Source of the DNA: Blastocladiella emersonii ATCC 22665
Lineage: Eukaryota; Fungi; Blastocladiomycota
Direction of reading: 5' to 3'
Length of the DNA stretch: 64,000 nucleotides
Assembly: GCA_025594325.1 (NCBI GenBank)
Contig: JANHCV010000001.1
Coordinates: 682,001-746,000, forward strand
Shown here one piece after another: positions 9,329 to 56,883 of this stretch. The notes under the pieces are model-generated. The model ran no database searches and was not told the origin of the DNA. It was given only the letters and a program-made list of their open reading frames with translations. The position numbers were made by a program, and so were the translations under genes. Position 1 is the stretch's first letter, and each line of letters begins with the position of its first letter.

Positions 9329-10510
9329 TCATCGACCGAGCGCACCGCCAACCATCGTAATCGCGCCCGTATACGGCGACCGGGCCATGAACCGGAGCCC
9401 CGACCGCGCCCACCACTCGAACGCCTCGGGGCACCGGCCATCGAGCCGCCCGGGCATCTCGGGCGCGTACTTGAGCTCGAGCCCCGAGTGCAGCCACCAG
9501 TCGAGCACCGCGATCTGCCCGTTGCGCGATGCGAGGTCGAGCGCCGACTCGTCGTACTCGAACTTGAGGTCCGCTTGCGCGCGCCACCACTCGAGCACGT
9601 CGACGCTGCCGTACCGCGACGCGAGAGTGAGGATCCGCGCCGGCTTGTACTCGATCGTGATCCCGCTCGCGCGCCACCACTCGAGGATGCGGACCTGGTT
9701 GAGCTGCGCCGCGTTCTCGAGAATCTGCCGGCGCCACGCCGTGCACGTTTCCGTGCGCAGCAGCCAGTCGAGGACGTGCACATGGCCGCGCAACGCCGCT
9801 TCCTCGGCTCCCTCGGCCACCACGTCGTTCCGCGGATACGACCCGGCGTCCATCCACCACTGCAGCACGCCGACGTGCCCGTTCACGCACGCGCCGCGGA
9901 ACGCTGCGCTTGGGTACCGCAGCTGCCGCGCGCCCGCGTACTCGCGCCACCACTCGAGCACCGCGATCTGCCCCGCGGACGACGCCTGGACGAGCGCCTC
10001 GGCCGTGAAAGTGAACGGGAGCCCGCTTCGCTGCCACCACTCGAGCACCGCGGTATGCCCCTGCGCGCTCGCGATGCTGAGCACGTCGTCCGAGTGCGCG
10101 ACCGCGAGCCCCGAGCCCATCCACCAGTCGAGCACGTGCGTGCGGCCCGCGAAACACGCGCGGTCGATGGCGCGCGCGCCGTACTTGAGCTCGAGCCCCG
10201 AGCACAGCCACCAGTCGAGGACGTGCGTGTGCCCGTGCTCGCACGCGAGATCGATGGGCTCCTCGTCGTAATGCAGCGGCAGCTTGGCGTCAAACCGCCA
10301 CCAGCACAGCGCCGCGAGGTTGCCGCGGCCCGACGCCTGGTGCAGCGAGCACCACGGCAGCTGTGGGATCACGGCGCGCTGGACGACAACCGACGTCTTG
10401 GGCAGCACGTAGAGGTAGTTGAGCAGGTGCGCGAACGGCTGCGGTGAACGCGCCGCGAAGACGAGGATGCGCTCGAGGATGCTGGTCGGGAAATCGGCTG
10501 GGCTGGTCAT
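9329..10510 (-). CDS. Ankyrin-repeat protein of the 'GHxxVLxWW' type with F-box-like N-terminus
   Basis: About 10-11 repeats such as ACEHGHTHVLDWW, ASAQGHTAVLEWW, ASRNGQIAVLDWW. N-terminus DFPTSILERILVFA. ATG at 10510 chosen inside the longer 9329..10807 ORF. Confidence 0.8.
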   Translation of the reverse strand: MTSPADFPTSILERILVFAARSPQPFAHLLNYLYVLPKTSVVVQRAVIPQLPWCSLHQASGRGNLAALCWWRFDAKLPLHYDEEPIDLACEHGHTHVLDWWLCSGLELKYGARAIDRACFAGRTHVLDWWMGSGLAVAHSDDVLSIASAQGHTAVLEWWQRSGLPFTFTAEALVQASSAGQIAVLEWWREYAGARQLRYPSAAFRGACVNGHVGVLQWWMDAGSYPRNDVVAEGAEEAALRGHVHVLDWLLRTETCTAWRRQILENAAQLNQVRILEWWRASGITIEYKPARILTLASRYGSVDVLEWWRAQADLKFEYDESALDLASRNGQIAVLDWWLHSGLELKYAPEMPGRLDGRCPEAFEWWARSGLRFMARSPYTGAITMVGGALGR

Positions 10511-10897
10511 TTTGGTTGAACTGCTTGCATTCGTACGGCGTCGCGGGGTGCTTGGATCGACTGGCGGCGGTTGGCCCTCATTTGTACGCGCCCTGAACGT
10601 TACTGTTCGCGCGCGTGCGATCCAAGTCACTGCCCCTCGTGTGCTGCGCGCCGTGGGAAATGGGAGATAAGCCGCACCGTAAACCGCAGTCAACCGCGAA
10701 ACCAGGGGTTCTGGCGGAACTGGCTCCGTGTTTCGAAAGCATGTGATCACGCGTCGTTCAATTTCCCTCAAGGTTCGCAACGCGGGAAAACGAGCGCGCC
10801 GCATCATCGAAAACCTTCATCTATTGTCTTAACCGGACATACACGCTTCTACCATTCCAGTCTTAACTCGGCGAGGACCTCTGCGGCGCCAGGCAGA

Positions 10898-11893
10898 CTA
10901 CGCGGTGACCATACCCACGAGCTCGTGGGCAGTAAATCCGAGGCCGAACAGCCAGCGAAGCATTTCGGGAACAACGCGCGTCGCGTCGTGTTGGTATGAC
11001 ATGGAGCAAAGAAATACCTCGGCCAAATCGTAATTGGAGATCAGTTTGATGAACTGGACTCGGTCGACGCCGTAAGGACCGTCCAAGATCCGCTGCACAG
11101 CGTCCATGTTCCAGCAGTTGAGCGCTGCGAGCGCAAGTGAGATCGCGAACGGTACTCGAAGCTCGCCATGATTTTCGAGGTAAACGCAAAGGGCGCCGCG
11201 CGTTTGCGCGTGCTTGGTGAGCCAAGCTCTCGACCACAACTGAAGCGGGACTTGCTCGTCGATGATGGTAGGAATTAGACGAACAAGTCGGTCGAGACAC
11301 GCAAGCATTCCGTCAACGTCGCCTAGATGGAGGAAAAAGCACGGCAGGAGAAATCTCTCCGGGACGGCGCTCCATCTCGGACGGGAGAGCAGCTGGTCCG
11401 AAGCATCGTCCGAGAGAAGATCTGAGAGAGGGATGCCCAAATCGGCGGGCAGCAGGCGGTACACGTCGTCAAGAACGGATTCCGTGAATGGGTGCGACTG
11501 GCGAGCGCGCACGACGTTGGGATGGTCGCCACCGCACAGCCCACCGGTTCCGCTGCGCAGCGTACCGGGGAACCGCGTTTTGAGGTACCAAGCAAAGGGA
11601 AACTGCCACTGGCGTGACGAGTAGTAGTAGTTATCGAGTTCCGGCCCAGTCATATCGACGGGCTTGCCCGTTGCATCGCGGAAAGAGTCAGTCAAGTGCT
11701 GATACGAGTCATAGCTGACACTGCGGACGACCCGGTGCGCCCAGGGGCGGAGAAAGATCGGTGAGCAAGCGGAATCACGGGTCGCACGAGAGGCAATGGC
11801 AAGGTTGCGAGACGGGCGGGCTAACACAAGGACTTGTTCGAGAAGCTCTTGAGGCATTGCATCAAGTGCGAGATGCTTTTCATTCGTTTCCAT
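10898..11893 (-). pseudogene. METNE-family copy 1, 3'-truncated (no exon 2 seen)
   Basis: METNEKHLALDAMPQELLEQVL, QWQFPFAWYLKTRFPGTL and MSYQHDATRVVPEMLRWL align with the paralogs. The ORF stops after 331 aa, against about 430 aa for exon 1 of intact copies. Confidence 0.75.
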
Positions 11894-12006
11894 GGCGAAA
11901 GCGTGCGAGGGCCGAGAGCGGGAACGGGGCAGTCGGTGGCGTCACTTGGCCTCCGCGGTGGCGCTCGCCTGAGATGCGGTTAGGTGACTAAACAGCTGAC
12001 CACGCG

Positions 12007-12489
12007 TTGAACATCTCGGCGACACTTCAAGATCGGATCGGTCACCACGAATGGGGCCCAAACGAGAAGATTTCGGCCATCCACCACCTTTCGCCCTCGC
12101 TTGCTGAGCTTTCGATTTGCAGTGGCAACGCCGACGTTGCTGTCATTCGAGCGCTCGTAGCACGCCTGCCCCCGAACCTTACCAAGTTGCGACTTGAAAA
12201 CGTTCGGCTTGATGATGCAGGTGTTGCCAAGCTGCTGCCCGCGCCTCCCTTGTCGCTCAAGCATTTGAGTCTCATGGATAACTATGAAATCACCGATCGT
12301 TCAGTGCACGCTCTCGTTGCTCGCTTCCCACCCGCCCTGACCGATTTGAACCTCGTGTCCACGAAGATCACTGGCGCTGGATTCCGAGCGATCAAAAGGG
12401 ATGCGCTTGACTCGCTCCAACTCCGTGTTTCCATGGCCGTGTACCGGGAAGGGAAGAATTATGCTTTGCAAACCCTTGATAAAATGTGA
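12007..12489 (+). pseudogene. RNI-like LRR fragment related to the 45-50 kb LRR family
   Basis: LPPNLTKLRLENVRLDDAGVAKL..LKHLSLMDNYEITDRSVHALVARFPPALTDLNL: 3-4 repeats only, no family N-terminus, TTG start. Confidence 0.6.
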
Positions 12490-13204
12490 AGGTGGAAGGG
12501 CGAATGGCGATGCACGTGAAGCTAAGAAGCAATGCATGGATTTGGAAAATCGGACGCTCAATACGGAGCCGGAATTGAAGAGTGCTAGAGGCGAAGAGGG
12601 AGGCCGGAGCGGTCGTCAGTTTGTTGTTGGTCAGTGACGCGTCCCCCACTCTTGCGCGCGCCCTCACCCTGGCTGCGCCACCACCTCCACCGCACCTCCA
12701 CCGCAGACCAGAGTGCGGAGAAGAGACTCGGATTTCTTTGCGCGATAGATCTTCGTTGGGGGGCAGCAGCACTAGGCTCTTGCCGGGACTGAGCGTATGC
12801 CTGCAGATTAGCGAGGGTGTCGGACGGCGCGGTATGGGGTTGTTATGTGTGGGGCCGAGTTCGATTCCTATTCCTTGGCTCCTTGACGACGACTCCTGTG
12901 TGGTAAGAAGCAGCGCGCAATCCGACTTAGCCCTCCGAAATGCGGCCAATTCCTTCCCTTTTTTTTTCTTCCCGCCCCCTCTTGTATTCGCTCGCCCATT
13001 GTACGATTTGTGTCGCGAGAATTATGATTTCATTCCTGCCTCGGCCCCGCAGTGGGCCTTTTCAACTCGATCCGGAAACTTGAGCTTGACGCCAGGTGGC
13101 TGCCCGCTGCACTCGGCGAGTTGGTCGTGGCCATCCCAGCGGCTTGGTAAAGTTCAAATTTTATGATGAACAACATTTCATTGGCGAGCGTGAAAGAGTT
13201 CAGG

Positions 13205-14138
13205 CTAATTGAGCGACAGCAATCGCACCGCGACAGCTGGTTCCATCAGTTCCGCTGGAATCCTGAGGTATCTACAGGCATCAGGAACGGCGCGGAGGAC
13301 AAGTTCAGCACACTCAAGCTCGTTTTGGGCGATGAGGTCGAGCACGATTGATTGAGCGCGTTTCACGTCCATCCGCACTACAAAAAAATGCGGGAGGAGT
13401 TGTGCCCAGCCTTCCGTGCCGAGCGGGCACTTTTCTGCAAACCGAGGGACCATGCTGTACAGCTGAGAATTCCTGACGACAGATTGGACAAGCTTCCTGG
13501 CGCTCGTCAAGGATCGAGGGAAGTACGCGAACAAGCCGGTCGAGGCACGCAATCATGCTGTCAACGTCGTTGGCATGCAAGAAAAAGTGCGGGAGGATCA
13601 GACCCTCGGGGATGGCGCTCCAGCCGGAGCGATTGACAAGTGTGTCCGAGTTGCTGTCAATATCCGCAAAGATGCTCGTGATCGACTTGCCCTTGTGAGG
13701 TGAGGTCAAGCGTTACAAGTCATCAAGGACTGGAGGCGAGAACGGATGGGTCGCACGTGCAAAAAGCACGCCTAGATGCTCGCCGCCACAGAAACCGGGG
13801 GTCCCGTCGCAAAGGGTCCCCGGGAAGCGCGTCTTGAGATACCAAGTAAACGGGAACTGCCACTGCCGCACCTCGGGAAACCGCTCGCCGAGTTTGGGTC
13901 CGGTATCGTGGCTGGGTGAACCGGCGGAATCCTCGGAAGAGGCCTGGTATATCGCGAACATGACACCTTTTGTAACGCGCCGCGCCCACGGGATCAGGAC
14001 GTCGGGCGAGCGAGCCGCGTCGCACGCCACGCGGGAAGCACAGACAGGCTGAATTCGCGGGCGGGTCAAAGCAAGGACCTGCTCGAGGAGCTCGAAAGGC
14101 ATTGCGGCAGGTGTGAATAAATTTTCATTGGTTTCCAT
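13205..14138 (-). pseudogene. METNE-family copy 2, with nonsense codon and large internal deletions
   Basis: In-frame TAA at 13713..13715, then ORF 13314..13709 continues in the same frame. After 'ILDER' it shifts to late exon-1 sequence (YSMVPRFAE..WAQLL) fused to late exon-2 sequence (RAQSIV). Confidence 0.8.
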
Positions 14139-14352
14139 GTTGTGGGTTCTTGCTGCTCGGGAGAGACGGCGAACTCGCGGGTGTGATCAAGGTGACTGAG
14201 GTCAGCCAGCCCTTCGGCCCGCGCGTTCTGTCAGTCATTCGCCGCCCTCTCGTCTCCCACTGTTATCAAGCTCAGATCCGGACGCAAACAGGACAAAGAG
14301 AACAATACAGAATAGTTTTGAACTATTTGACTGGGTCTTGGGTTAAAATCAA

Positions 14353-16640
14353 TCAAATGAGGCCGGACGGCTCAAGGATCGCGCCCTTCACATGCGCGAG
14401 CTGGAAGACGCTGGCCATGTCCACCAGCTCGCGCCGGAAGTCATTCTCCTCCAAGACGGCCGGGATCGCCTTGAGAATAATGACCGGAATCTCGATGTCG
14501 CCGTCGAACAGATGCTTGCGAACAATCGACTGCGCGCGGATCACGTCCATGGACTCGGCGAGGGCCGCAGGCCCACCTTCCGCGTTCGCGACGACTTTCC
14601 AAATCCAAGGCTGGGTCGAAGTGCACCAGAACACAATGTGTTTGGCAAAGAAACACGGGTCGTACGTGGCCAGCATCTCGCAGAGATCCTGGAGCGCACG
14701 CCGGGTGGTTTCGGCGCGGATGTCAGCGTCAGCGAGCAAGTGGGGACCACGACGAAGTATGGTCGCGAAACGGCGCGCAGGCGGGCTCACGTCAGGGTCG
14801 AAGCGACAGCGGAACCGTAAAAGCAGACGTTCGAGGACGCGAAGCGCTTGCGCAACGTATGGTTCAGGACCGTCGTAGCTGGGCAAAAAGCGATTAATAC
14901 GCGCAAAGCAATGTTCTGCGACTGCAAGGATCACCAGGAGTCGCGTGGAGCGCGAAACGAGATCCTCGCCGTCCATTTCGTCCAGCACAGCGTCAAATGC
15001 GCCGTGAGCTGCGGATGGGACCAGCAGCCCAGCGAGGTACTCTGTAAGCACGCCCGGGCAATTGGCCCCGGCAAGGTTTGGGTCCTGGAGTTTGCCATAT
15101 AGAAGCTTGCGGAACTGGGCCTGGTCGATTGGCGACTCGTCACTCAGAAAGAAAGCGAGCGCGCTTCGGGAGTGAGCTGCAAAGTTAGCGCCAATGATGC
15201 CGACAGGGTCAAGTCCCAACGATCTGGCAGCGGCACAGATGCTGGTGCGGAGCGAGTTTGTCACGGAGTTCGACTCGGTTGGGAATAAAGCTACATTGTG
15301 TCGAGTGGTATGAGTGCGCTGAGCGCCAAGTAAGCTGCAAGGTTCGTACCAGAAGCCAGGAGAGAGGAATGATCCGCGCCTGGGACGAATCGGCGCAGCA
15401 CATCCACAATATCGTCGTGCCGCTCGCCACCGAGAAAATGCTGGAGAAGCTTTGCCCAGTGGAATTGGGCTAGCAGTGAGCGCTCGGCAAATTGAGAGAC
15501 AAGGTGATACAAGCGCGGCTTGCGCACCACGTAATTGACCATGTTTGTCGCCAGGTGGGCTTGGGTGACCACGTCAAGTTCCTGGATCCAATGTGCGTCA
15601 AACTCTTGGAACAAGACCGCGAAAAGCTCACCGTGCCCTTCCTCAACATAATTCGCGAAGCAAATCGGCCACATCTGGCGAGGCGGGGGACAGTTGGCAA
15701 GTAGCCAGCGAAGCATGGCCGAAACCACCTGGACTGCGTTGTGCTGGTGGCGCATAGTGGAGAGGAAAATTTCGGCAAAGTTGTGTCTGAACAGGAGGGC
15801 AAGGAACTCGGCTCGATTCACCTCGTACGGACCATCCAAAATCCGTTGCAGCGCGTTGAGATTCCAGCAATTGAGTGCCGCAAGTGCCAACGAGGACGTG
15901 AAGGAAAACTTCACGGAGAGATCTTGGCAAATGCCGTTGAGTGCAATACGGGTCGCCAAGTGCTCGCTGAGCCAAGCGCGAGACCACAGAGAGAGCGGAA
16001 CGCGCTCGTCAAGAATTGAGGGCAATACGTGAACAATTCGGTCGAGGCACGCTATCATGCTGTCAATGTCGTTGACATGCAGGAAAAAGCAAGGGAGGAT
16101 CAACCCTTCGGGTACGGCAGCAAAAGCGGTGCGGGTACGCAATGCTTGCAAGTCGCTGTCAAGGTCCAAGAGCAGACGTTCGATCAATTCGACTTGACGA
16201 ATCGACGGCGTGTGGTACACGGCATCCAAGACGGGTGGCGAGAAAGGATGCGCAGGGCGTGCAAGGATCACGTCGGGATGCTCGCCGCCGCAGAGTCCGG
16301 GAGTCCCGTCGCGAAGCGTACCTGGGAAGCGCGTCTTGAGATACCACGTGAGCGGGATCTGCCACTGGCGCACCTCTGGAAACCATCCGTCAAGTACGGG
16401 CCCCGAGCTGTAGGTGCCGTTATCCACGTCGTAGCCATTTGAAGCTTCGTAGGTTTTAAAGGTGACGCCGGTCATAACGCGCTTGACCCAGGGAATCATG
16501 ACGACTGGCGGGCCAGCCGCTTGGCGGGCAAGTCGAGTCGCAGAAGCGAGCTCACTCCGCGGACAGGCCAGCACGTGGACCTGTTCAACTAGTTCGAAAG
16601 GCAATGCATCAAGTTGAAGCGGAGTTTCATTCGTTTCCAT
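14353..16640 (-). CDS. METNE-family copy 3, intact, 742 aa; exons 16640..15350 and 15290..14353
   Basis: Phase-1 intron 15291..15349 (GTACGA...ATGTAG) joins ORF 15291..16640 to ORF 14353..15264 in frame (LAS-A-LFPTESNSVTNSLRTS). Confidence 0.8.
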
Positions 16641-16828
16641 TGTGGATTAGTGCGCTCGCGGGAGAGCGGGTGCGACAAGGCAGCGTGTGGCGTCTCGACC
16701 CCTGGTCCAGGGGCCCTGGATCGCACTCATCGCGCCTGGAGCAAGTTACCTGAGATACAGTCGGTAAGTGAAACTAAACCTATCATATTTGACGATATCA
16801 AAAATCAATCCGACAAAGCGTAAACGCG

Positions 16829-19135
16829 TCAAAGGAGCCCAAACGGCACGAGGATCGCGTCCTTGACGTGAGCGAGCCCGCCCACGTTGACCATGTCAAC
16901 GAGCTCGCGTTGGAACTGCTCGGCCTCCAAGACGGCCGGGATCGCGCGGATGATGATATGATGGTAGGAATCTCAATCTCGCCAACGAGGAGATGATCGC
17001 AAATAATTGACTGCGCGCGATCAACGCTCACTGCCGCGGCGAGGGCCGCGGAGCCGCCATTCGCTTCCGCCACGATTTTCCATACCCAAAGCGCGGTGTC
17101 AACGGAGCAGGGTCCGCCACGAGCGGCAAAAAGGCAAGGATCGTACATGGCCAGCGTCTCGTAATATTCATGAAGCGCACGCTTGGCCGCCTCGTTGGAG
17201 CCTTCAAGGCCCTCCCTCGTGTACAGAGCGCGGCTGTACAAATTGGTGAACCTGCGAACAGCCTGGCTTTCCGCGGAAACGACGCGGCAGCCGTAGCGCG
17301 AGACCAGACGTCTGAGAACGCCAAGCGAAAGCCAAACGAGGGGATCAAGGTCGCGTTGTGAGTAGAGTGAGAGCAAGCTTTGTTGATTGCAGTAGTTTCC
17401 AACCGCGGTGATGACTAGGAGCTGGAGTTTGCGCGATTTGGCGTCCTCGCCGTCCAGTTCAAGTAGCACGGGCTCGAGTGCAGCAGTGGGAAAAAACGGT
17501 GAGCCAAGGTGATGAGGTGATGAGGTGTTGAGCAAACGCATCGTCATAAACACCCGCGCCTTTTTTCCGGCCCTCGAGGCACGGGTAGAGTAGCTCGCGA
17601 AGCTTCGCATGGTCCAGTGGTGACTCGGGGCTCAGAAAGTACACGAGCGTCTCATGCGAGAGAGCCCAAAAGTCATGAGCAACAATCAGGTTCGGGTCGA
17701 ACCCAAGCGCCTCAGTGGCGGTGCAAACGCTACGGCGGAGCGTATCGGTCAGCTTGGGCTCATCCTTAGCCGTCAAGGCTACCAGTGGAGGGAAAGCGTG
17801 CTATTCAGCCAAGGTTCCTTGCGTTACGTGTGAGTGAGGCGAGAGGAAAACACAAAGGGAATCAGCAAATGGTGGACATGCTGACGCACATCCCCAATGA
17901 CGCGGTCGTGTCGCTCGCCGCCAAGAAGATAACGAAGCAAACGCGACCAGTAAGCGGTGTTGAGGAGATAAAGCTCGATGCACAAGGTAGTGGATCCGCG
18001 GCTCGCGCGCTACGAACGCAATCATGTTGGCGGTCAACTGACCCTTGGTCTGCGGGCTGAATTCATGGACGCGATGAGAGTCGCACTCCTCGAAGACTGA
18101 AGCAAAGAGCTCCCCGTTGAAATCTTCCTCCACTTTGAGGGCGAAGCAGAGATCGCGAGAAGGGTCGTCCGATCGGATCGTGAACCCACGATCAAGCAGC
18201 CAGCGTAACATTCTGGGGACCGTGCGGGCCCCGTCGTGCTGGTGGCTCATGGTCTCGAAGAAAAGACTGGAGAGCTCGTCGTGCGAAACCGCGTCGAGGA
18301 GTTTAGCTTGGCCCGCCTTGTACGGACCGTCAAGGATCCGCTGTAGCGCGCCGAGGTTTCACGAGTTGAATGCCGCAAGCGCGAGCGCTTCGGGGTACGT
18401 CATCGAAGGCGGCTCGTAATGGTAGTGGTACATGATTTGGCGAGTGTTGAAGTGCCCAGTGAGCCAGGTTCGCGACCAGATAGAAAACGGGAGGTGTTCG
18501 TCAAGGATCGACGGTAGGACGCGAATAAGCCAGTCAAGGCAAGCAATCAGGTTGTCGACATCGTTGACGTGCAAGAAAAAGTAGGGGAGGAGGAGACCTT
18601 CGGGTATCGCGCTGAAACGGTTGCGGTTCCAGAGCGCCCTTGAGGTCGCGTCCATGGTCGCGATAATATCTGCAATCGACTGAGTCGTTGCGCTCGGCGG
18701 CATACGGCAGATGGCGTTGAGCACATTTGGCGAAAACGGGTGAGTCGTGTGGGCGAGGACCACGTCGGGATGATTACCGCCACTGAGAGCTGCAGTTTCG
18801 TCGCGAAGCGCGCCCGTGAACCGCGTCTTGAGGTACCAGGCGAAGGGGAACTGCCACTGGCGCACGGACGGGAAGACCTGGTCGAGTTTGGACCCGAAGA
18901 CGTGATCCCGCTTTCCGTCGCTGACAGGGCCGCAAGCGGTTTCATAGTCGTTCCAGTTCACGCCTGTGACAGTGCGTCGCACCCACGGAAGCAGAACCGA
19001 GGGCGAGCGCGCGGCGTCGTGGGCAAGCCGACTCGAGGCGACGAGCTCCGTGTGCGGGCAGGCCAACACGAGGACATGCTCGAGTAGCTTGGGTGGCAAT
19101 GTATCAAGTCGGAAAGGTATTTCATTCGTTTCCAT
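16829..19135 (-). pseudogene. METNE-family copy 4, full-length but disrupted
   Basis: TGA at 18359..18361 where paralogs have Trp (NxWN). Frameshifts near 17960, near 17560 and near 16955 (ATCAT duplication). Paralog-like C-terminus 'AILVPFGLL*' ends at 16829. Confidence 0.82.
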
Positions 19136-19179
19136 TGTGTTTTAGTGTCGGTGGACGGGGAGAAGAAGCCCTGATCGCG

Positions 19180-19527: not shown

Positions 19528-21831
19528 TCAAATGAGGCCAAACGGCACGAGGATCGTGTCCGTGACATGAGCGAGACCTGGAACCATGGCCATCTCGACG
19601 AGCTCGCGTCGAAACTTCTCGGAATGAAGCACGTTCAGCATCGCGCGAAGAATGGTGACGGGAATCTCGGTCTCGCCATTCCGCAGATGCTCGCGGACCA
19701 TGCCCCGCGCTCGGCTCACGTACATTGCCGCGTTGAGGGCCGCGGGCCCGCGGTCCGCTTCCGCGACCAACTTCCACGCCCAAAGCGGGGTGTAGATGGA
19801 CCAGAACTCGCCATTCACGGCGAAGAAGCACGGATCGTACGAGGCCAGAGTCCGGTGAAAGTCATCAAGCGTGCGCTTGGTTGCCTCGGACGGGATATCG
19901 ACGTCATGATACGTGTGCAGACCGCGGCCAAGCATGTCCATGAGCAGCCGGATCGACGGACGCTCTACGGCAACGAGTCGGCAGCGGTAACGCGCGACGA
20001 AAATCTTGAGCAAGCGAAGCGCATCGTAAACTTTACGCTCAGGGCCTTCGACCGAGTACAGCGAGCCCAAGATCCGCTTGCTGCAGAAGCACGCGAGCGC
20101 AATGATGACCTCAAGCTGAGTTCGGCGCGGCTGCGCGCTTTCGCCGTCCAGTTCGCGGAAAACAGGACCAAGGGCGGCATCGGACGAGGGCGGAGCAGTA
20201 AGCATCATAAAATGCTCAACGAGTGCGTCCGCATGCTGTTCAACGAGAGTAGTTGTGCCCTCGATCCGCGGGTAGAGCAGTTTGCAAAGCTGCGCGTGGT
20301 CCACTGGCGACTTGAGACTCAAAAGGTGAACGAGCATGTTGCGGGACAGCGCGTCAAAGTTGAGAGCAACCACCTGAACAGGATCGATTCCAAGAGTTTT
20401 GGCGGTGGAGCACACACCACTAACAAGCCTTTCCAATGGATTACTGTCGATGAGGACTAAAAACATGAGGAGCATGAGCGAGTTAGTTCAGATCATGCCT
20501 CCCGTGGCTCGAACGCGTGAAAAAGTACCATTGGCCAAAACCGTGGGATGTTCAGTGCGAGGGATATAGCGCCGCACAAGTTCAACAACGTCGTTGCGCC
20601 ACTCGCTGCAAAGAAGGATGCCAAGCAAGTCCGACCAACGCGATATAGTCAAAAGTTTCTGCTCTGCGAACGTGTGCACGAGGGAGTAGACTTGCGGTAC
20701 GTCGGCCACGTACTCAAACATCTTCTCAACCAGCTGGCTTTTGGTCTCCGCATCAAACGCTTGGACGCGGTGTGAGTCAAACTCCTCGAAGACGGCAGCG
20801 AACAGCTCGCCGTAATGTTCGTCCTCCACGTGCAGAGAAAAGCAGAGAGGATCGGAAGGGTCGTGAGAGCGGATCGTGAGCCCACGGCCAAACAGCCAGC
20901 GCAACATTTCCGGGACCACGCGCGGCGCGTCGTGCTGGTGGCTCATGGCGCAGAGGAAGAGTTTGGCCACCTGGTAATCAGAGTTAGCGGCAAAAATTTT
21001 GGTCTGGTCCACTTGGTAAGGGCCGTCGAGAAGCCGTTGAAGCGCATGGAGGTTCCACGAGTTGAGTGCCGCGAGCGTGAGCGATTCGGAAAACGTCATG
21101 AGCGGCAGCTTGTCATGAACGCCGTGCAGGTGCTCGCGAGTGGGAGAATGCTCCGTGAGCCAAGCTCGCGTCCAAAGGTGGAAAGGGATTTGCTCGTCCA
21201 CAATTGCGGGCAGACAGTTGACGAGTTTGGCAAGGCACACAAACATGTTATCGACGTCGTTGGCGTGAAGGAAAAAGAAGGGGAGGGCTAGACCTTCTGG
21301 GACGGCGGCCCAAAAGTTCCGGATCAGCGGCGGGCGGGCCGTGGTCAAGTCCAGCTCCGCAACGTGGTTCATGATGTCCGCGATTGACTCGTTGGCGAGG
21401 TCCGGCGGCAAGCGGTAGATGGCATCGAGAACACCCGACGAAAACGGGTGCGTCGTGCGGGCGACGACCACATCGGGATCATCTCCGCCAGCGAGTCCGG
21501 ATATGTTGTCGCGAAGTGTACCTTCGAAGCGCGTCTTGAGGTACCACATGAACGGCGACTGGCACTGCCGCACGCGGGGGAACCGCATGTCAAGTTTGGG
21601 TCCCGTGTAAAAGTGGCCGTAAGATCCAAAAGAAGACTCGTAATCTTTGTACGTGACGCCAGTGACGGTGCGCCTCACCCACGGAAGCAGAAGAGAGGGT
21701 GAGCGCGCAGCGTCGCGGATTGCTCGAGTGGCTGCAACGAGCACGGGGTGCGGGGAGGCCAGCACAAGGGCGTGTTCGAGTAGCTCGGGTGGCAATGCAC
21801 CAAGTCGTAAAAGTTTTCCATTCGTTTCCAT
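19528..21831 (-). CDS. METNE-family copy 5, intact, 743 aa; exons 21831..20529 and 20456..19528
   Basis: METNGKLL start at 21831. Phase-1 intron 20457..20528 (GTACTT...ACTAAC...TTTAG) gives an in-frame join LAN-V-LIDSNPLERLVSGVC. Confidence 0.8.
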
Positions 21832-22474: not shown

Positions 22475-24744
22475 CTACAAGACGCCAGGACGTTCCATCG
22501 CGTACTTGTTGGTGAACATGAGATCGCGCCGGAACCTGGGGCAAGCGAGCACGTCTGGGAAAGCGCGAATGATAAGAGCGGGAACCATGGTCGCGCCTTC
22601 TTCGATATGAATTTGGACAATGAACCGCGCGGAGGCTACTGGCACGAGTTGGGCGAGGGTCTCTGGACCGTCTTCCGCGTCAATCACAAGCCTCCATGCC
22701 CACAGCGGGGTCTCGGTCGACCAAAACATTCCGTGAAAAGCAAAGAAGCAGGGATCGCAGATGGCCAGTGTCTCGGTGAGCTCGTACAGGTCAAGCATCG
22801 CAGCAACGGTGGGAACCTGCCCGTTGAGAATGGTACGGCCGCAGTGTTTGAGCAGCGCCGCAATCTGGCGGGCACCTGGGCGTTTTTTAGTATCCCAAGC
22901 GTAGATGCGATGACGGAAACGCAAGGTCATGCGCTTCAGGCGAGAAAGGGCGTGAGTAAATTCCGGCTCGAGATCCTTGTTTGGCAGCAGAAAGTGAGAA
23001 TGAAGCTCGAAGCAACTTTCACCAATTGCGACAATGACCTGGAGCTGAATCTTGCGCGCTTCGTCGTCGTCGCCGTCCAGCTCACAAAGCGCCGCGTCAA
23101 ACGCGTCGTCAGAGAGCGCAATGAGATGATACGCAAGGACGCCATCACAATCGGCCGCATGAAATTTTGAGTCGTAAAGCTTGCGGCAAAGCAGTTGGCG
23201 GAAACAAGCTTGATCGAGCGGCGATTCGGGGCTCAAGGAAAATACAAGTGCTTCTCGAGTATGCACTGCAAAGTTGATCCCAACGACTTGGATCGGATCA
23301 ACACCAAGTGATTTGGCGGCAGCACACACGCCAATGCGAAGCGAGTTGGTTATCTCGCTAGGTCGTTTCTCGGCTAACGCTAAAGATGATGAAGGTGGAG
23401 GACGTTAGCTAGGGCAAGAAACGCGAGCAGCATGAAAGTACCTGAAGCCAAGCTTGTAAGGAGCTCCGCGGCAGGGACATATTGGCGCAAGTCGTTGACG
23501 AGCTCGTCGTGACGCTCGCCTCCAAGCAGGTGGGACAGCAGTCGCGACCAGTGTCGTGCGGTGAGCCATGAGAGCGCGGCGAAGCGTGGAACCAAGTGGT
23601 ACACTTGCGGCTCACGCGTAACGTGATCGACCATTTTCGCGGCCATTTCCTGTTGACGGTGTTTCTTGAACTCCAGGACTCGATGAGAGTCAAACGCGTC
23701 GAACAAGGCAGCGAACAGGTCGGCACTGGATCCAGCTTTCACGTACGAGGTGTACCTGATCGGCTCGCATGAAGGGATCGCGAGCCCGCGTTCAAGCAGC
23801 CAGTGCAGCATTTCGGGCACCACCCGCGCCGCGTCATGCTGGTGGCTCATGGAATTGAGAAAGATATTAGCAAAGCCCTCCTTGGAAAGCATGGTGATGA
23901 AGTCAGCTCGATTCACCTTGTAGGGTCCGTCCAAGATGCGCTGCAGCGCGTTGAGGTTCCAGCAGTTGAGCGCCGCAAGTGCCAGCGAGGCCGGAAAGGG
24001 GAAAGAAGCTTCGTAATGAGTGTAATGAGTGTAGGAGAGCGCGCAGCGCGTGAGCGGGTGTTCGGTAATCCAAGTACGCGTCCAAAGGGTAAGTGGGACG
24101 ACATCGTTGGTCGTGGATGGAAGTACGCGGACAAGACGGTCGAGACAGGCAATCATGTTGTCAACGTCGTTTGCGTGCAGGAAAAAGTAGGGTAAGACGA
24201 GGCCTTCGGCAACAGCACTCCAGCCGCGGCAGTATCGCGGCGGCGTAAACCAGTCTTCGTCTCCACACGAGTTGATCAGGAGGCTTCCGATCTGCCGGTG
24301 ACAGTAATGGGGAAGCTGGTACACGGCATCTAAGACTGGCGGTGTGAACGGATGCGTCGTGCGCGCGGTGATGACGTCGGGATGCTCGCCTCCACCAAGG
24401 CCAGGGGTCCCGTCACGGAGCGTGCCCGGGAAGCGCGTCTTGAGGTACCAAGCGAACGGGAATTGCCACTGCCGCACCGCGCTGCGCCAGTGGTCAAGGT
24501 CGGGTCCTGTATGGTAATAGTTGCGTCCCACGTCGCAGCTATTGGGAGCTACGTAAGCCTCGAAAGTGACGGCGTTGACCACGCGTTTGACCCACGGAAG
24601 CAGGACGACCGGCGAGCGGCTCGCGTCACACACGAGGCGAGCTGCAGAAACGAGCTCGCTGCGCGGACAAGCCTGGACGAGGACCTGTTTGACGAGTCCA
24701 AGTGGCAATGCATCAAATCTAAGCGTTTTTTCATTCGTTTCCAT
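22475..24744 (-). CDS. METNE-family copy 6, intact, 735 aa; exons 24744..23442 and 23379..22475
   Basis: Phase-1 intron 23380..23441 (GTACTT...GCTAAC...TTTAG) gives an in-frame join LAS-A-LAEKRPSEITNSLRIGVC. Confidence 0.8.
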
Positions 24745-46632: not shown

Positions 46633-48321
46633 ATGACCGAAACGAGAGTCAAACTGAATGTGCCAGATATCGTCGACACGATCCTGTGCAAGGCGATCAG
46701 GCTGCACAACCTGCACGACTTGAAGGCTATGCTGCCCTACGCTGCCGTATGTCGCCGCGTCGACTGTCCGAATGTGCTTCCGACCCTCTTTCAACACGCG
46801 TGGAAGTTGTCCACGGAAGGCGCAACGCTCGGCGACCGCCCCATTTACCTTCAAATGCGTGCCGATCTCAAGCTTCCCCTCGACGTTCCTGCGGTGGCTC
46901 TGTCGTTTGCTTCATCGAGCGGAGCTCTTGGGGTTATGATGTGGTGGAAAAATTCCGGCATCGCGCTCCCAGTTCCCATGGACATGTGTGAGCGCGGTCG
47001 CGCCTTTTTCAACCTGGACAGCGAGGTGCGTCGACGAGTGTACCGCTGATCTGCAGCGTCCAAAACTGACGCATTACCCTCGATCGTGTAGGGCTTCCCG
47101 CTTGCTGTTGATGCAGTGGGCGACGAAACCGTTCACCGCCTTGCCGAGTCGATTGATACGGATCCGCTTGAGCCCACTCTGGCGCTCGACCTGTCTCGGC
47201 TGACCATCCGCGGGACCGAAACGCTGGCGAAACTCTTACAACTCGCGCCGCAGTGGACCAGCAAGCTGTCGCTCGTTGCATGCAATCTCGATTTCGAGAC
47301 CGTGTCGCAGCTGCGCGAGGTCGACATGGTGACGGAGCTCGACTTGACTTGTAACTTTGTCGGCGTTGGCGCGCCCAAGACAATCACGGAGCGGTGGCTC
47401 CCGTGTAACCTGCGGGTGCTTAAATTGACCCACAACTTCCTCGGCAAACTGGCGCCCGAAACGATTCTCGCGCATCTCCCGCCGCTTCTCACGCACCTCG
47501 ACGTCGGCGAAAACCGGCTAGAGGGTCCTCAAGTCTGTGCGCTCGCTGCCTACCTGCCCGCGTCGGTCGTGCGCCTGTCTCTCCGAGATGCCAACACCGA
47601 CGCACCCACGATGCAGGCGCTCGCACCACGGCTCCCGCGCATGTTGCAGGAGCTCGACCTAGCCGGCGCCTATATCACGGAGGATTGCGCACTTGCGCTT
47701 GCACCCCACCTGCCGCCATATCTCGTTACTCTCGACCTTTCCAACACGTACATGGACGGGGATTCTGTGCGTGCGCTCGCATTTGCCTTTCCTAAAACGC
47801 TTCGCTCGCTCGCATTCAACAATCATACCAGGTGTGGCTTCAGTCATTCAGTTTGCGCATTCGCCAGAGCGCTTCCACCGAACCTCGTGCACCTCGAGCT
47901 GACCCGTGTGGATATCAACTCATACGATGCCAAAGTCCTCGCGTATGAGTTCCCAAAGGGCCTCAAACGCCTTTCAGTGCACGACTGTAAGCTCACTCCG
48001 CAACTCGTTAGCACGCTTGCCGCCGGCCTTCCGAACCGGCTTGAATCGCTTGATCTCAGCAAAAACAATCTCGGCGACGAGGGCACCGAGGCGCTGGCCA
48101 AGCACTTGCCGTCGAGGCTCGTTCACTTGGACTTGGCCCACACCAAGCTCTCGGACGCGAACGCGCGCACCATTCTCGGCGCTTCGCCACAGACTATTCG
48201 CAGTTTCAAGCTTGACGGCAACGACCAAGTCTCGGCCGCGTTGCACGAGGAGATTCGAGCGATGCTCTTTGAGCGCCGCCTCGCGGACGCAACCAACATG
48301 ATGCACCAGCAGCAAGGTTAA
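46633..48321 (+). CDS. Ankyrin-LRR family copy 2, 540 aa; exons 46633..47025 and 47092..48321
   Basis: Intron 47026..47091 (GTGCGT...CTGAC...GTGTAG) is in frame. About 12 RNI-like LRRs (LPxxLxxLDLxxNxL). Confidence 0.8.
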
Positions 48322-48629: not shown

Positions 48630-50356
48630 ATGGAACCCGCCGTAAAACTCAACGTGCCCGACCTCATCGACACGATCCTGTGCAAGGCCGTGGTGCTGCA
48701 CGACCCGGACGACCTCGACGGCATGCTGGCGTGCGCCGCCGTGTTCCGCCGCGCCGACTGCCCCAACGTGCTGCGCACCATCTTCAACCACGCGTGGATC
48801 CTGTCCATGGACGGCGCCAGCGAGTGCGGCCGCGTCGACTACCTCAAGATGCGCGTCGCACTCCGCTTCCCGCTCCGGTACACGGGCGCCGCCATGGCGA
48901 AAGCCGCCGAGGCCGGCTGGATCGAGGTCCTGCACTGGTGGCGCGCGTCCGGGCTCTCCCTGCCCACGCCCGTCAAGATGGAGAAGCGCGGCCGCGTGTT
49001 CTTTGACCTGGACCAGCATGTACGGGTCTACCCCTCCCCCAACAGCGTGCACTCACGATCCCTTCCTCCCTGCAGGGTAACGCCACGACGCCGGCGGCGG
49101 GCGACGCAGTCGTTGACGGGCTGCGCGAGCGCATCCAGGAGGCGCCACTGCGCGGCGAGATCTTCATCGGCGCGCGGCGCATGACGGCGCGTGGGACACA
49201 GGTCTTTGCCGAGCTGCTGCAGCGGCCGCCGCAGTGGACGACCAAGCTGACGCTCGAGACGTGCGACCTCGACTTTGCGAGCGCGTCGGCGTTCCGCAAC
49301 GCCGATATGATCACGGAGCTCAATCTGACGGGCAACTTTGCCGGGTACGGCGCGCCCGACGAGATCGCGGAGCCGTGGCTGCCGCGCAACCTGCACACGC
49401 TGTCGCTGCACGACAACTTCCTCGGCAAGACGGCGCCCGCGGCGATCCTCGCGCACCTCCCGCCGCACCTCACGTCGCTCAACCTCAGCGAAAATGACCT
49501 CACCGAGGACCAGGTCCTCGTCCTCGCCGACAACCTGCCCGCGTCGCTCCTCCACCTCTACCTGTCCGACACGGTGCTCACGCCCGACGGCATGGCCGCG
49601 CTCGCGCCGCGGCTCCCGCCGCGCCTCGAGACGCTCCACCTCAACCAGACCGACTTTGATGACGACTGCGCCGCGCTCCTCGCGCCCCACCTGCCCCGCC
49701 GCCTCCGCGTGCTCGCTCTCTCGAACTCGCTCCTGACCGACGTCGGCATGAGCGCACTCGCCGCCGCGTTCCCCACGACTCTGCGCGAGCTCGGTTTGTC
49801 GGACAACGAGGAGCACGGCGACAAGGCCGTGGCGGCGCTCGCGGCCGCGATGCCGCCGAACCTGACGCGGCTCGACGTCAGCGGTACGCCGCTTGGCGAC
49901 GCTGGCGCGGCGGCGCTCGCGGCGGCGCCTCTGCCGTGCGGGCTGCGGCACCTCAAGCTGCAGTCGTGCGACCTGACGTCGGCCGGGGTCACGGCGCTGG
50001 CGCCGGCGCTCCCGCGGTCGCTGCAGACGCTGCACCTCGGGTCGAACGCGATCGGCGCGGACTGGGTGGGCGCGCTCGTCGCGAACACGCCGCCGGGGCT
50101 CAGCGAGCTGCACCTGCCCGAGACGGGCATGAACGACGACGACGCGGTGCGCGAGCTCCTCGGCGCGCTACCGAACTCGATCATGCTGTTCGACCTCAAC
50201 GACAACGACGTGTCCGACGACATGATCGCCGAGGTCCAGACCGAGCTCATGCGCCGCCGGATCCAGGTCGCCGCCCAGGCGTTCCTCAACGTCGGGCCCG
50301 AGGCGCTCAACGTCAACCTTGGCCAGCTGCCGTTCCCGTTCCCGTTCCCGCTCTGA
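48630..50356 (+). CDS. Ankyrin-LRR family copy 3, 556 aa; exons 48630..49019 and 49076..50356
   Basis: MEPAVKLNVPDLIDTILCKA and AMAKAAEAGWIEVLHWWRASGL. Intron 49020..49075 (GTACGG...CTCAC...TGCAG) is in frame and at the same position as in copy 2. Confidence 0.82.
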
Positions 50357-51715: not shown

Positions 51716-51781
51716 GCCGACTTCCTCAAGCTTCAGCTGACCAAAATCACAAAACCCATCAGACACAAAACAGCTGTTCTA

Positions 51782-54207
51782 TTAATCACTCTGCTCGCCA
51801 CCCTCGACCGCCTCGCGCATCGCCCTCGCGAGCCCTGGCACCTTGAGCACCACATTCTTATCAAACCAGTCGCGGTTGTTGGTCCCCTCGGCCACGGCGC
51901 GCAGACACGCCGGGTCGCGGGCCGTGGCCGGACACACGCGGAACACCTGCAGGATCACATTCGCGTTTGCCTTTCCGCTCCGGCCCGCCTCCCACACGAT
52001 CGCCTCGGCACACGCATCCGGCGGCACGAACGCGTCGAGCGCGCCCGCGGGAAAGTGCCGCGCGATCAGCGGGAGGAGCCAGGTGCCGATCTCACCCTCG
52101 CTCGACCCCCACAGTCCGCCCACGGTCGCGGGACTGTGGCCAATGAGCAGCTGGAGAAACCGGTGCGCCGCAGCAACCTCGCGCCCGCGGTGCTTGGCCA
52201 GGAGCCCCGTCGCGTCGTGGCCCGGGTCCGCGGCGCGCGCGATGCTGACGAGGTCCTGCGCGACGCGCGGCGCGAGCGCGGGCGTCACAACCGAGGTCGG
52301 GCACAGCGCGAGAAAGTGCTCAAACGCGGGCAAAAACTCGGGCGAAACGGGGAACCGCGGGCCCGCGACGGCCGTCCCCCATTGCACCAGCTCGTGCCGG
52401 GCGCCCGCCATGGCCGAGATGAACGACGCGTACACCTCGGTCCAGTCGCGCTCCCCCTCTTGCTCGCGTTTCCCCGCGAGGTGGTGCATCGCGGCGCGCG
52501 CCGAGCTGGGTGTCGCGAGGAGCGGGACCAGGATCCCGACCAGTGCGTGTGCGCAGTTGGGCTCCCGGAGCGCCGGGAACGGGTACGCGAGGAGTGTGCG
52601 GGCGAGCGCCAGGCGCTCGTCTCGGCTGCCAAGACCCAGTGTGCCGAGGTCGGGGCCGAGCGCGCCGTCGGCAAAGGTGACGATCTCGGGGCCGAGAAAG
52701 GCGTCCGAGCGCGCCACGAGCACGGGCGCCAGGAGCTGCGAGAGGGGTGTCGAGGTGCACGCGCGCGCGAGGGTGCAGATCTGCGATACGGCGGATTTGG
52801 ATGTGCGGTAGGTGCCCTTGACGTGCGCGAACACTACATTCGGCAGTTAGTGTTAGCGCTATTCCCAGCACAGTGAGTGAGAGTAGATAGCGTACGCTCG
52901 GTGACCAGCGCGTCGCGCTGCTCCTTGACCACGACATTGACCATGCGGCGCAGCTGCTCCATGGGCCGGTGCGCGTGGATCGCCGCCGCGACGAGCACCG
53001 CCCACGGCCGCACGTCCGTCGTGCCCGGCCACGCGCGGAGCAGCTGCGCGAGCTCGCGGTCGTACCCCTGCTCGACCCACGGCGCGAGCCGCTCCATGAC
53101 GTGCCGCGTGGTCGCCCACATTTCCGGGTCGAGCGGGCGCGCCTTGTCGTACTTGGTAAACACGGCGCGGAGCACGTCGGGCCCGAAATTGAGCGGGCTC
53201 AGGTAGCACGACACGTACGCGTCCGGGCCGGTCGCCGCGGGCATCGAGAAGCCGTGCTTGAAGAGCCACTCGAGCACGGGCAGGACGCGGTCGGCCGGGT
53301 ACTCGTTGACGAGGCCGAGGAACGCGTTGGCGACGCGGTGGTGCGAGAGGAACGCGACGACACCCGTGAAATCCGGGTGCAGCGCGGCGACGGCCTTGAG
53401 CGCGGGCAGGTTCCAGTGGCACGCGGCCGAGAAGGCGACGAGCGTGAAGAAATCGATCAGGATCGGCTCGACCTCTTCATCCTCTTCCTCCGAGTCCTCC
53501 GAGTCCTCGTCGCCCTCGCCGCCCAGCTCGCCCGCCAGCGCCGCCACGCGCTCGTACACGGCGGGCGCGCAGTCGGGCAGCATCGCGAGCATGCGGTGCG
53601 CGGGGAGCGCGCGGTGGAACGCGATCACGGGCACGCGTTTCGCCATGAGCGTAAGCGCGGCCGTGAGCTCGTCGTCGCTCTCGGCGGCTTCAAAGTACAG
53701 CGCGAGCACGAGGCCGTCCGACACGAGGCCCTGCAGCGAGACGCGGCGGAAAAAGCACTCCAGCTGCGCGGCCCGCGCGAGCTTGGCGACGTGCTCGAGC
53801 TGCCGCTCCCGCGACACAGCGACGTCGTCGAACGAGCAGCTTGGGTCGCAGCGCAGCGACAAAGAGAACAGCGCGCGGAACAGGTCGAGGTCGAGGGTGG
53901 GTCCCGCGGGCAGATTGAGGCGGTGCCGCATCGCGAGCCGGAGCCGCACGTAGCGCGCAAAGTCGGTCTGCCACGGCAGCATGGACCCGTCGGTGCCGAA
54001 CGCCGGGGCGTCTTCATCCAGATCGTCGAGGAGATCCGGCAGCGTGTGGCCGAACCATTGCACGAGCGCCGAGGTCGGCTGGCGCACGGTGTCGGCGAGC
54101 AGCCGCGTCGAGGCGAGGACCGCGACCCGTGGAGTGGCGAGGGCGGCGACCGCGATGGCGAGCTCGAACGGCAGGTCGGTGGAAGGGTGCGTCGCATCGA
54201 GTGACAT
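51782..54207 (-). CDS. Diverged METNE-like family gene, 787 aa; exons 54207..52896 and 52833..51782
   Basis: MSLDATHPSTDLPFELA start. Phase-1 intron 52834..52895 (GTACGC...CTAAC...ATGTAG) joins ORFs 52834..54381 and 51782..52834 in frame. Confidence 0.8.
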
Positions 54208-54526
54208 GGTGTGTGGGTCTAGTGTGCAAGGGATTGTTGAGAGGAAAGAAAGCGGGGGAGCAGGTCCTTCTTGAAGAGTGCCTCGCAGGATGCGCCTCAG
54301 TTGATTGCGGTGCGAGACGCCGCCCAACAAGGCACGCGGCGCGCCACCACCGCTCCCAAGCTCCAAAAATCGACCCTCCAAGGCTTCGAGTCAAATCAGC
54401 GCGAATGAAGTCCTCGACTGGGATCCTCTTGCGCCGGGCCGGCCGAGGTCACGCTCGTCTCCCTTGTGCCGCAACAGCATCAGCTGACCGAGATCACAGA
54501 ACCGATCACACACACGAGCGCGCCTT

Positions 54527-56883
54527 CTATTCTTCACTCCCTTGCTTCTTCGACTCGACCGCCTCGCGCATCGCCCTCGCGAGCCCGGGCACCCGCTGGA
54601 CGACGTGCCGGTCAAACTTATCATTCTCACCGACCGCCTTGGCCACGATCCGCAGACACTCCGGGTCGCGGGCCGTGGCCGGACACGCGCGGATGATCTG
54701 CAGGATCAACTTCCCGTGCACCTTCCCGTCGCGCCGCGCCTCCCAGACGATGGCCTCGGCGCACGCGCGCGGGGCGACAAACGCGTCAAGGGCGCCGGGC
54801 GGAAAGTACCGCGCGATGAGCGGGAGGAGCGACTCGCCGACCTCGAACCACAGCCCGCCGACGGCCACGGGCGCATGGGCCACTAGGAGGTGCAGGAACC
54901 GCTGCCCCGCGCTCACCTCGCGCCCGCGGAACTCGGCCGCCGCGAAACTCAGCGCGTGGTACCGCGGGTCCGCGAGGCGCGCGATATCAATCAGGTCCTG
55001 CGTGACGCGCGGGCGGAGCGCGGGCGTGACGATCGCGGCCGGGCACACCGCGAGGAAGTTGGCGAACGCGGCGAAGAAGTCGGGCGTCACGAGGAACAGC
55101 GGCGCGGCGACCTGCACCACCCAGTCGGTCACCTCGTACCGGCTGCCCGCCATGGCGGAGATGAACGACGCGTACAGCTCGGTCCAGTCGCGCTCGCGCT
55201 TGCCCGCGAGGTGGTGCAGCGCCGCGCGCGCCGAGGACGGGGAGGTGAGCAGCGGGACCAGGATCCCGATCAGCGCGTGCGCGCAGTTGGGCTCGTGCAG
55301 GACCGGGAACGCGTGCCCGAGCAGCGAGCGGGCGAGCGCGAGGCGTTCCTCGCGGCTGCCGAGGCCGAGGGAACCGAGGTCGGGGCCGAACGTGCCGTCG
55401 CCGATGGAGACGAGGGCAGTGGCCAGGAGCTGCGACAGCGGCGTCTTGGTGCACGCGCGCGCGAGGAGGCATAGCCGCGCGACGTGCGACTTGTTCTCGT
55501 TGTACCGCTCGGGCTCGTGCGTGAAGACTAGAGAGTAAACGCCAAACTGGTCAGTTTTCCGCGTAGATGGTGACAGCTCACTAAAAACGTACGCTCGGTG
55601 AGCAACGCGTCGCGCTGCTCCTTGGCCACAACGTGCACCATTCGCCGCAGCTGCTCGATCGGGCAGTGCGCGTGGATCGCCGCCATGACAAGGACCGCCC
55701 ACACCCGCGCGTCGGTGACGCCAGGCCACGCGCGCAGGAGCTGCGCGAGCTCGCGGTCGTACCCCTGCTCGACCCACGGCGCGAGCCGCCCGAGAACCCG
55801 CTTCGTGGTGCCCCACTTGTCCACGTCGAGCGGCCGCGCCTCGTCGTACTTGCGGAACACGGTGCGCAGCACGTCGGGACCGAAGCTGAGCGGGCTCAGG
55901 TAGCTCGAGATGTGGATGGGCCACCACTCGGGCCCGGGTTCCGCAAGCAGGGAGAAGCCGTGCGCGAACAACCAGTCGAGGACGGACAGGACGCGGTCGG
56001 CCGGGTACTCGTTGATGAGGCCGAGGAACGCGTTGGCGACACGGTGGTGCGAGAGGAAGGCCATGACGGAGGACAGGTCCGGGTGCAGCGCGGCGGCCGC
56101 CTTGAGCGCGGGCAGGTTCCAGTGGCACGCGGCCGAAAACGCGACGAGCGTGAAGAAGTCGACGCGGCGCGGCTCGCGCTCCTCGCGCAGCTCGCCCGCC
56201 AGCATCGACACGCGCTCGTACATGCACGGCGAGCAGTCGGGCAGGAGCTCGAGCAGCCTGGACGCCGGCAGCGCGCGATTGAACGAGACGGCTGGGAAGT
56301 GTCTCGCCATGAGCGTGAGCGCAGCCGCGAGCTCGTCGGTGCACTCGGCCGCTTCAAAGTACAGCGCGAGCACGAGGCCGTCCGACATGAATCCCTGCAG
56401 GTGGATGGGGCGGACTTGGTGGAAGAAGCTGTCCGACTTGACGACGACGTCGTGCGAGAGCGCGTCGAGATGCTCTTGCTGCCGCGCCCGCGGGACCGCG
56501 GCGAGCGACGCCGGGTCGCTGCGCAAGTACGCGAACAGAAAGGCGTGGAACAGCGCGAGGTCGAGCTTGGGCTCCACGGGCAGGTCGGTGCGGTGGCGCG
56601 CGGCGAAGCGCAGGCGTACGTAGGAAGCGAACCCGGACTGCCACGGCCGCATCCAGCCGTGGCCGACGAGCTTGGTCGGGCCGCCGCGCTCCAACTGGGC
56701 CAGCAGGAACGGTAAGGTGCGGTCGATCCAGTGCAAGAGCGCCGAGGTCGAGAGGCGCGCGGTGTCGGCGAGAATTCGCGTTGACGCGAGCACGGCCACG
56801 CGCGGCGCGGCGAGGGCGGCAATTGAGATGGCGAGCTCGAACGGCAGATCGTGGAAGCGACAGCGTGTTGCATTGGGTATCAT
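54527..56883 (-). CDS. Diverged METNE-like family gene, 763 aa; exons 56883..55593 and 55527..54527
   Basis: Tandem paralog of the previous gene, with long near-identical stretches. Phase-1 intron 55528..55592 (GTACGT...CTGAC...CTAG) is in frame. Confidence 0.8.

Follow-up and report, generated by a model that had tools for sequence, protein, structure and literature searches.

A 64-kb stretch of the genome of Blastocladiella emersonii ATCC 22665 (G000:C1:682001-746000, hereafter the window) carries a dozen genes or gene remnants in which a short N-terminal head precedes a repeat-like body. The question raised by this locus is whether the heads are F-boxes, that is, copies of the module through which substrate adaptors attach to a ubiquitin ligase, and whether they all represent the same module. 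An earlier note on this DNA had proposed that a single F-box-like module heads four differently built families with interchangeable binding domains: the METNE array, a pair of genes at 52-57 kb, an ankyrin gene and the leucine-rich repeat (LRR) genes. Here, we examined the heads in the window and in the whole surveyed genome (32.65 Mb, 21 contigs), and distinguished two types, type 1 (METNE-type) and type 2 (ankyrin/LRR). With moderate confidence, we consider that they belong to two separate expanded superfamilies, type 1 being a diverged F-box on a solenoid body and type 2 a different module.

Two hidden Markov models (HMMs), based on alignments of the type 1 heads (A4) and of the type 2 heads (A5), were run over all six frames of the window; for spliced genes, each exon was searched separately. 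Twelve N-terminal heads were identified, eight of type 1 and four of type 2 (Table 1), with no further match at E<0.1 in these frames. This confirmed the number of genes or pseudogenes in the earlier note, whose quoted N-termini were also all present where it had placed them. All eight type 1 heads are on the minus strand; at least three of them belong to broken or truncated METNE copies.

Comparison of the heads with each other merged the four proposed families into two. At 52-57 kb, the heads of the gene pair matched the METNE-head HMM (E = 2e-5 and 3e-3, or 5e-18 and 2e-15 with a fuller HMM), and the pair could be aligned with other METNE members over the whole first exon (alignment A1); judged from these alignments, array and pair are one family. 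Ankyrin-type and LRR-type heads aligned over 49 columns with an hhalign probability of 96.6% (P = 6e-10); so far as profiles can tell, these heads are clearly one module, and the ankyrin gene and the LRR genes also have in common the first VLxWW ankyrin-like repeat. On the other hand, type 1 and type 2 heads (A4 versus A5) could be aligned over the first helix only (16-17 columns, 14-29%), at odds with the idea of a single module. On sequence grounds, the twelve genes thus fall into two head modules and two superfamilies, each with its own head.

The bodies showed the same division. Each head type kept to its own kind of body, and no shuffling between type 1 and type 2 was seen. When 14 more distant type 1 places were examined, all of them matched the whole-exon-1 METNE profile and 12 did so over the body as well, which indicates that the type 1 head stays on one kind of body, contrary to the suggestion of interchangeable binding domains behind the METNE head. 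In the whole genome, 460 first-look candidates were found with the type 1 head profile and 475 with the type 2 head profile. Of each, 150 were scored, and all had E<=1e-5 (type 1) or E<=1e-13 (type 2), which gives at least 150 places for either head; the counts are minimum values, and pseudogenes are among the places counted. Both the METNE and the ankyrin/LRR families are large tandem birth-and-death expansions.

Profile-profile homology to bona fide F-boxes was found for the type 1 head. As a reference, we used 20 bona fide F-boxes cut from the B. emersonii genome itself, or a merged set in which five heads of a third local family were added. Against the 20 F-boxes, the type 1 head had an hhalign probability of 86-87% (P = 4-5e-6). 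The observed score (30.2) was above the maximum of 200 column shuffles (20.7), and among 25 sliding windows along exon 1 the N-terminal one alone scored (85%, compared with 0.8% or less elsewhere). Deeper type 1 alignments were made with heads from other species and from distant paralogs: 82 sequences gave a probability of 82.6% with the 20 F-boxes as reference and of 87.9% with the merged set, and 96 sequences gave 93.4% (P = 2.4e-7), over 43 columns corresponding to helices 1 and 2 and the start of helix 3. A match that grows stronger as more diverse heads are added is what one tends to see with true remote homology. With the own-genome F-box HMM, 85% of type 1 heads exceeded the 95th percentile of shuffled decoys. 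As a lead only, the ten nearest named neighbors of the 75-amino-acid type 1 head in a protein language model were all F-box clusters (scores from 0.84 downwards).

The layout of the type 1 head is also F-box-like in several respects. It starts with Leu-Pro, after which comes an acidic amphipathic helix, and its end is marked by an invariant Trp about 38 residues on (+38 from the Leu of Leu-Pro, compared with +37 for the terminal Leu-Trp of local F-boxes). Exon 1 has five invariant and five near-invariant columns, and two of each are located in the head, the invariant two being the Pro and the Trp. The third local family has clear F-boxes (one member above both Pfam cut-offs; 96.6% against the own-genome F-box set). 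Its similarity to the type 1 head is 71%, the two have a common start about 12 residues before Leu-Pro, and the family may be an evolutionary intermediate. Its members are helical, Pfam-dark proteins of 500-650 amino acids (G000:C1:4802700-4806500, C20:1171850-1174100, C5:347000-349300 and C19:559150-561250; L087-L091). In the public protein P0069, the type 1 head is located exactly where the Pfam F-box-like model scores (E = 0.037). This protein (KAI9173056.1, H9P43_007187, 1425 amino acids, contig C21) has two METNE-type heads, at residues 3-64 and 685-746, and represents a tandem fusion or, alternatively, two gene models that were merged.

Several results weigh against an F-box origin of the type 1 head. 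Neither F-box nor F-box-like models of Pfam gave a match at E<=1 in the 12 genes of the window, and six-frame scans of the genome with these models identified 70 + 51 places, none of them in the window; the own-genome F-box HMM likewise gave no significant match in the six frames of the window. The weak match in P0069 was the only one among 32 public METNE relatives, and Pfam hmmscan of 10 further superfamily members yielded no usable F-box match. When the type 1 profile was compared with PDB sequences, no F-box protein was retrieved; it matched designed LRR proteins through the generic Leu-x-x-Leu-Pro motif, which implies that part of the type 1 signal is common motif. Moreover, the hhalign match ends before helix 3 does, and the AlphaFold2 (AF2) model of the head, with three helices at 15-25, 29-42 and 45-58, is of low confidence (predicted local distance difference test, pLDDT, 32-51; 32-63 for the three helices).

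On the basis of such results, it might be supposed that neither head is a functional F-box, and that a convergent Leu-Pro-acidic helix opens family-specific caps, oligomerization or localization elements that act without a Skp1-cullin-F-box (SCF) ligase, for example in scaffolds or receptors. The negative Pfam results throughout, the motif class that also led to designed LRR proteins, the low model confidence and the replacement of the usual Trp of the F-box 'CKxW' motif in type 1 would all agree with this, as would the observation that VLxWW ankyrin proteins of other fungi match the own-genome F-box HMM mostly in the Leu-Pro first helix. However, the 43 matching columns of type 1 extend beyond the motif, the signal grows with alignment depth and is unique to the N-terminal window, a link exists through the Pfam-positive local F-box family, and the invariant Trp has the spacing of the F-box terminal Leu-Trp. 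We therefore regard convergence without F-box function as unlikely. The possibility that the type 1 head is a degenerate LRR was also considered, and rejected because the head is predicted to be helical and occurs once per protein. The descent of the type 1 head from an F-box appears quite likely from the profile comparisons, its working as a Skp1 dock somewhat less so, and it would most likely be a strongly diverged F-box that has lost the 'CKxW' Trp by replacement. Recognition of the heads by F-box HMMs, a check proposed in the earlier note, failed with the Pfam models in all 12 genes but similarity was seen at the profile level in eight of them, and the resemblance to own-genome F-boxes was well beyond controls for the METNE-type head, which indeed stands at the very N-terminus of a repeat-like body.

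The type 2 head was modeled by AF2 with much better confidence (pLDDT 90.8 for LRR gene 2): residues 9-23, 29-36 and 45-54 form helices (pLDDT above 90), and an ankyrin-like pair comes after them. Its hhalign probability against F-boxes was 34% (P = 4e-4) and 21%, and by subtype 20.7% and 5.6%, the latter for the LRR subtype alone. No Pfam F-box match at E<=1 was found in 41 type 2 members. Fold searches with the confident model retrieved no F-box chain (Foldseek E>5, VIA Z<=4.9, nothing in BFVD), although this is a small fold that is hard to retrieve; no F-box was found among PDB sequences with the type 2 head profile, and the ESM Atlas gave no usable match. A word-indexed protein search with the head detected one paralog only. 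A by-eye assignment as BC/SOCS-box was rejected because the spacing did not fit. In its profile, the type 2 head is F-box-like in the first helix only and faintly in the second. It is described here as a different three-helix module, a family-specific head whose ancestor may, or may not, have been an F-box; a remote relationship is possible from the profile similarity.

These data also bear on the view that all twelve heads are one F-box-derived module shuffled onto helical, ankyrin and LRR bodies as a single SCF adaptor repertoire. All heads do open, at the very N-terminus, with Leu/Val-Pro followed by an acidic amphipathic helix. The type 2 score against the F-box exceeded all 200 shuffles (20.5 versus a maximum of 14.4) with helices 1 and 2 in register, and heads of the ankyrin subtype were the highest of type 2 against the F-box HMM. 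In addition, there are known precedents for F-box + LRR and F-box + ankyrin architectures in other systems, and the genome contains extra Skp1 paralogs. Nevertheless, the short alignment between the two types, the very low value of the LRR-subtype heads, the absence of Pfam F-boxes from the 41 type 2 members and from 120 ankyrin relatives, the lack of an F-box fold match for a confident model and the restriction of each head to its own kind of body make a single shuffled module improbable.

Three Skp1-like genes were identified in the genome: a canonical one with introns (G000:C15:2012492-2013093) and two divergent intronless paralogs on C1, encoding 182 and 197 amino acids (G000:C1:792480-793028, L084:480-1028:-; and G000:C1:3199240-3199834, L085:41-634:+). 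One of the divergent paralogs is located about 46 kb past the end of the window. Most fungi have a single Skp1, and several are often found in lineages with F-box expansions; the extra paralogs may thus be taken as circumstantial support for an adaptor function. Each superfamily combines a constant head of about 55 amino acids, with three predicted helices, with a variable repeat body. In type 1, a putative diverged F-box is fused to a novel, Pfam-dark alpha-solenoid of about 700 amino acids encoded by two exons; in the mechanism that we propose, the head would dock on Skp1, either the canonical protein or one of the two divergent paralogs, and the solenoid would recruit substrates to an SCF-type ligase. 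In type 2, VLxWW ankyrin repeats follow immediately after the predicted three-helix head, and most members have RI-type LRRs as well. A broader proposal is that both heads dock Skp1-type proteins and that the two divergent intronless paralogs serve them. This seems doubtful; if it were correct, at least 300 places (about 3% of roughly 10 000 genes) would represent two previously invisible SCF-like adaptor classes with new recognition scaffolds.

The METNE body was analyzed separately. The AF2 model of exon 1 is an alpha-solenoid (mean pLDDT 77.6), for which structure searches (Foldseek, VIA) retrieved generic helical repeats only (Z<=7.6) and no specific structural relative; no Pfam match was found for the exon 2 open reading frames (ORFs). 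Across 17 METNE members, identity was 38% in the head, 40% in residues 91-150 and 21% in residues 301-449, the most variable part, a pattern that fits a constant head on a variable surface. The copies in the superfamily have the type 1 head and a homologous helical body; confirmation of the 65-nt phase-1 intron is limited to the annotated copy. With the full-length METNE profile, 86 representatives were found among 1.84 billion proteins. Ten of the 86 were looked up, and all were 'hypothetical' proteins of B. emersonii, B. britannica or Catenaria anguillulae (Blastocladiomycota). A word-indexed protein search with METNE exon 1 gave no match.

The full-length intronless members of the type 2 superfamily have the order head, two or three VLxWW ankyrin repeats, RI-type LRRs. 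Relatives of the VLxWW ankyrin part are widespread, occurring in chytrids, Allomyces, Catenaria and megaviruses, and the whole type 2 head is recognizable in several proteins of Allomyces, Catenaria and B. emersonii. The Leu-Pro-acidic helix also opens many fungal VLxWW ankyrin relatives. The repeats of the ankyrin gene in the window (9332-10510, minus strand) have close relatives, at E = 1e-40 to 1e-53, in Megavirinae, and also in chytrids and Blastocladiomycota.

Nematodes, plants and mushroom-forming fungi are known for large lineage-specific F-box expansions. The B. emersonii families resemble them in their tandem arrays, many pseudogenes, hundreds of copies and a constant head with a more variable body, but differ in that they occur in a zoosporic early-diverging fungus (Blastocladiomycota), that their heads escape Pfam (about 40 places pass the PF12937 cut-off, compared with at least 150 type 1 heads) and that the type 1 body is an alpha-solenoid, generic at the fold level and novel in sequence. 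Because the heads escape Pfam, standard censuses would miss them. In Agaricomycetes, 67-1,199 F-box genes have been reported, mostly from recent tandem duplications; yeasts have about 20 and filamentous fungi 60-90 (10.1101/349894). Our literature search retrieved no paper that ties F-box expansion to Blastocladiomycota, and the words 'ankyrin', 'leucine-rich' and 'ubiquitin' are absent from the genome paper (PMC9730499). Should the METNE head prove to be a working F-box, B. emersonii, a model zoosporic fungus, would have an F-box repertoire several-fold above domain censuses, large adaptor expansions would also exist outside plants, nematodes and mushrooms, and substrates would be recognized by a new kind of scaffold, the METNE body.

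Compared with F-boxes in general (PF00646/PF12937; for example, Skp2, Grr1 and Cdc4), both heads are similar in their N-terminal position, length of about 45-55 amino acids, Leu-Pro plus amphipathic helix, three predicted helices and a protein-binding repeat body after the head; type 1 has in addition the terminal Trp at F-box spacing and 86-93% in hhalign against local F-boxes. Unlike F-boxes, both are below every Pfam threshold, type 1 lacks the core Trp of 'CKxW', and in type 2 the first helix is extended by about 4-5 residues and the loop before helix 3 is longer as well. F-boxes or F-box-like modules are combined with ankyrin repeats or LRRs in other systems, at the N-terminus in Legionella AnkB, at the C-terminus in poxvirus ANK/PRANC proteins, and in the F-box/LRR (FBXL) proteins. 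Type 2 is similar to FBXL and F-box + ankyrin proteins in having a short helical head beside ankyrin and RI-type LRR repeats, but its head is not demonstrably an F-box, its ankyrin repeats are of the VLxWW kind and its order (head, 2-3 ankyrin repeats, LRR) is unusual. Thus, our analysis separates type 1, for which an F-box reading can be claimed, from the ankyrin/LRR head, for which it cannot.

The heads of the window, with the genes or open frames to which they belong, are listed in Table 1.

Table 1. Positions of the type 1 and type 2 heads in the window (numbered from its first nucleotide)
Head	Position	Strand	Match	Gene, exons or open frames
Type 1, truncated copy at array edge	11711..11893	-	A4 HMM, E = 3e-26	ORF 10898-11893, 331 amino acids
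Type 1, collapsed or broken copy	13956..14138	-	A4 HMM, E = 3e-27	One TAA inside; match reaches residues 1-214 only
Type 1, apparently intact copy	16455..16640	-	A4 HMM, E = 8e-27	Exon 1 ORF 15291-16640 (modeled by AF2), exon 2 ORF 14353-15264
Type 1, broken copy	18953..19135	-	A4 HMM, E = 1.6e-27	Remains span about 16798-19135; one in-frame TGA in exon 1, within the match
Type 1	21649..21831	-	A4 HMM, E = 3.5e-25	Exon 1 20488-21831, exon 2 ORF 19528-20475
Type 1	24559..24744	-	A4 HMM, E = 1e-24	Exon 1 ORF 23380-24744, exon 2 ORF 22475-23329
Type 1, diverged pair copy A	54034..54180	-	A4 HMM, E = 2e-15	Exon 1 52837-54207, exon 2 ORF 51782-52834; P0002 62-64% identical over both exons (tblastn)
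Type 1, diverged pair copy B	56704..56883	-	P0002 100% identical over exon 1	'Hypothetical protein' H9P43_000264, 763 amino acids, gene 54530-56883; exon 1 55593-56883, 65-nt phase-1 intron 55528-55592, exon 2 54530-55527 (from splice sites)
Type 2, ankyrin subtype	10352..10507	-	A5 HMM, E = 1e-14	VLxWW ankyrin gene 9332-10510
Type 2, stump of 30 amino acids	45272..45361	+	A5 HMM, E = 6e-12, profile positions 3-32 only	
Type 2, LRR gene 1	46645..46806	+	A5 HMM, E = 2e-21	Gene at about 46633-48321
Type 2, LRR gene 2	48642..48797	+	A5 HMM, E = 1.5e-24	Head and ankyrin-like ORF ends at 49184; LRR ORF 49181-50356 in another frame

The repeat assignments of the type 2 bodies were confirmed with Pfam: the ankyrin gene matched Ank_4 (E = 7e-14), with Ank_2 and Ank_3 also above the cut-offs, and LRR_6 (RI-like LRRs) was above its cut-off both in ORF 47116-48321 of LRR gene 1 (E = 5e-14) and in the LRR ORF of gene 2 (E = 1e-21). 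The stump is a dead copy, followed by LRR remnants at 45384-46079 (tblastn). In LRR gene 1, the head and the LRR ORF are kept apart by an in-frame stop that lies shortly before 47116, and a single tblastn high-scoring segment pair to an intronless paralog (46654-48174) crosses this boundary in one frame from the head into the LRRs; the stop would belong to a short intron that keeps the frame, or else would have arisen recently as a nonsense mutation.

The diverged METNE pair (52837-56883, minus strand) has an inverted second copy about 22 kb away, outside the window (G000:C1:761124-763976, plus strand), with the same HMM scores and open-frame lengths, which explains the near-identical annotated proteins H9P43_000257, H9P43_000263 and H9P43_000264. 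Several other identical inverted pairs were present in the genome-wide head lists. Finally, a trough in GC content was observed over the METNE array (12001-24000; 57-59%, compared with 70-73% in the neighboring housekeeping-like genes), and the LRR cluster is likewise lower in GC (61-64%).

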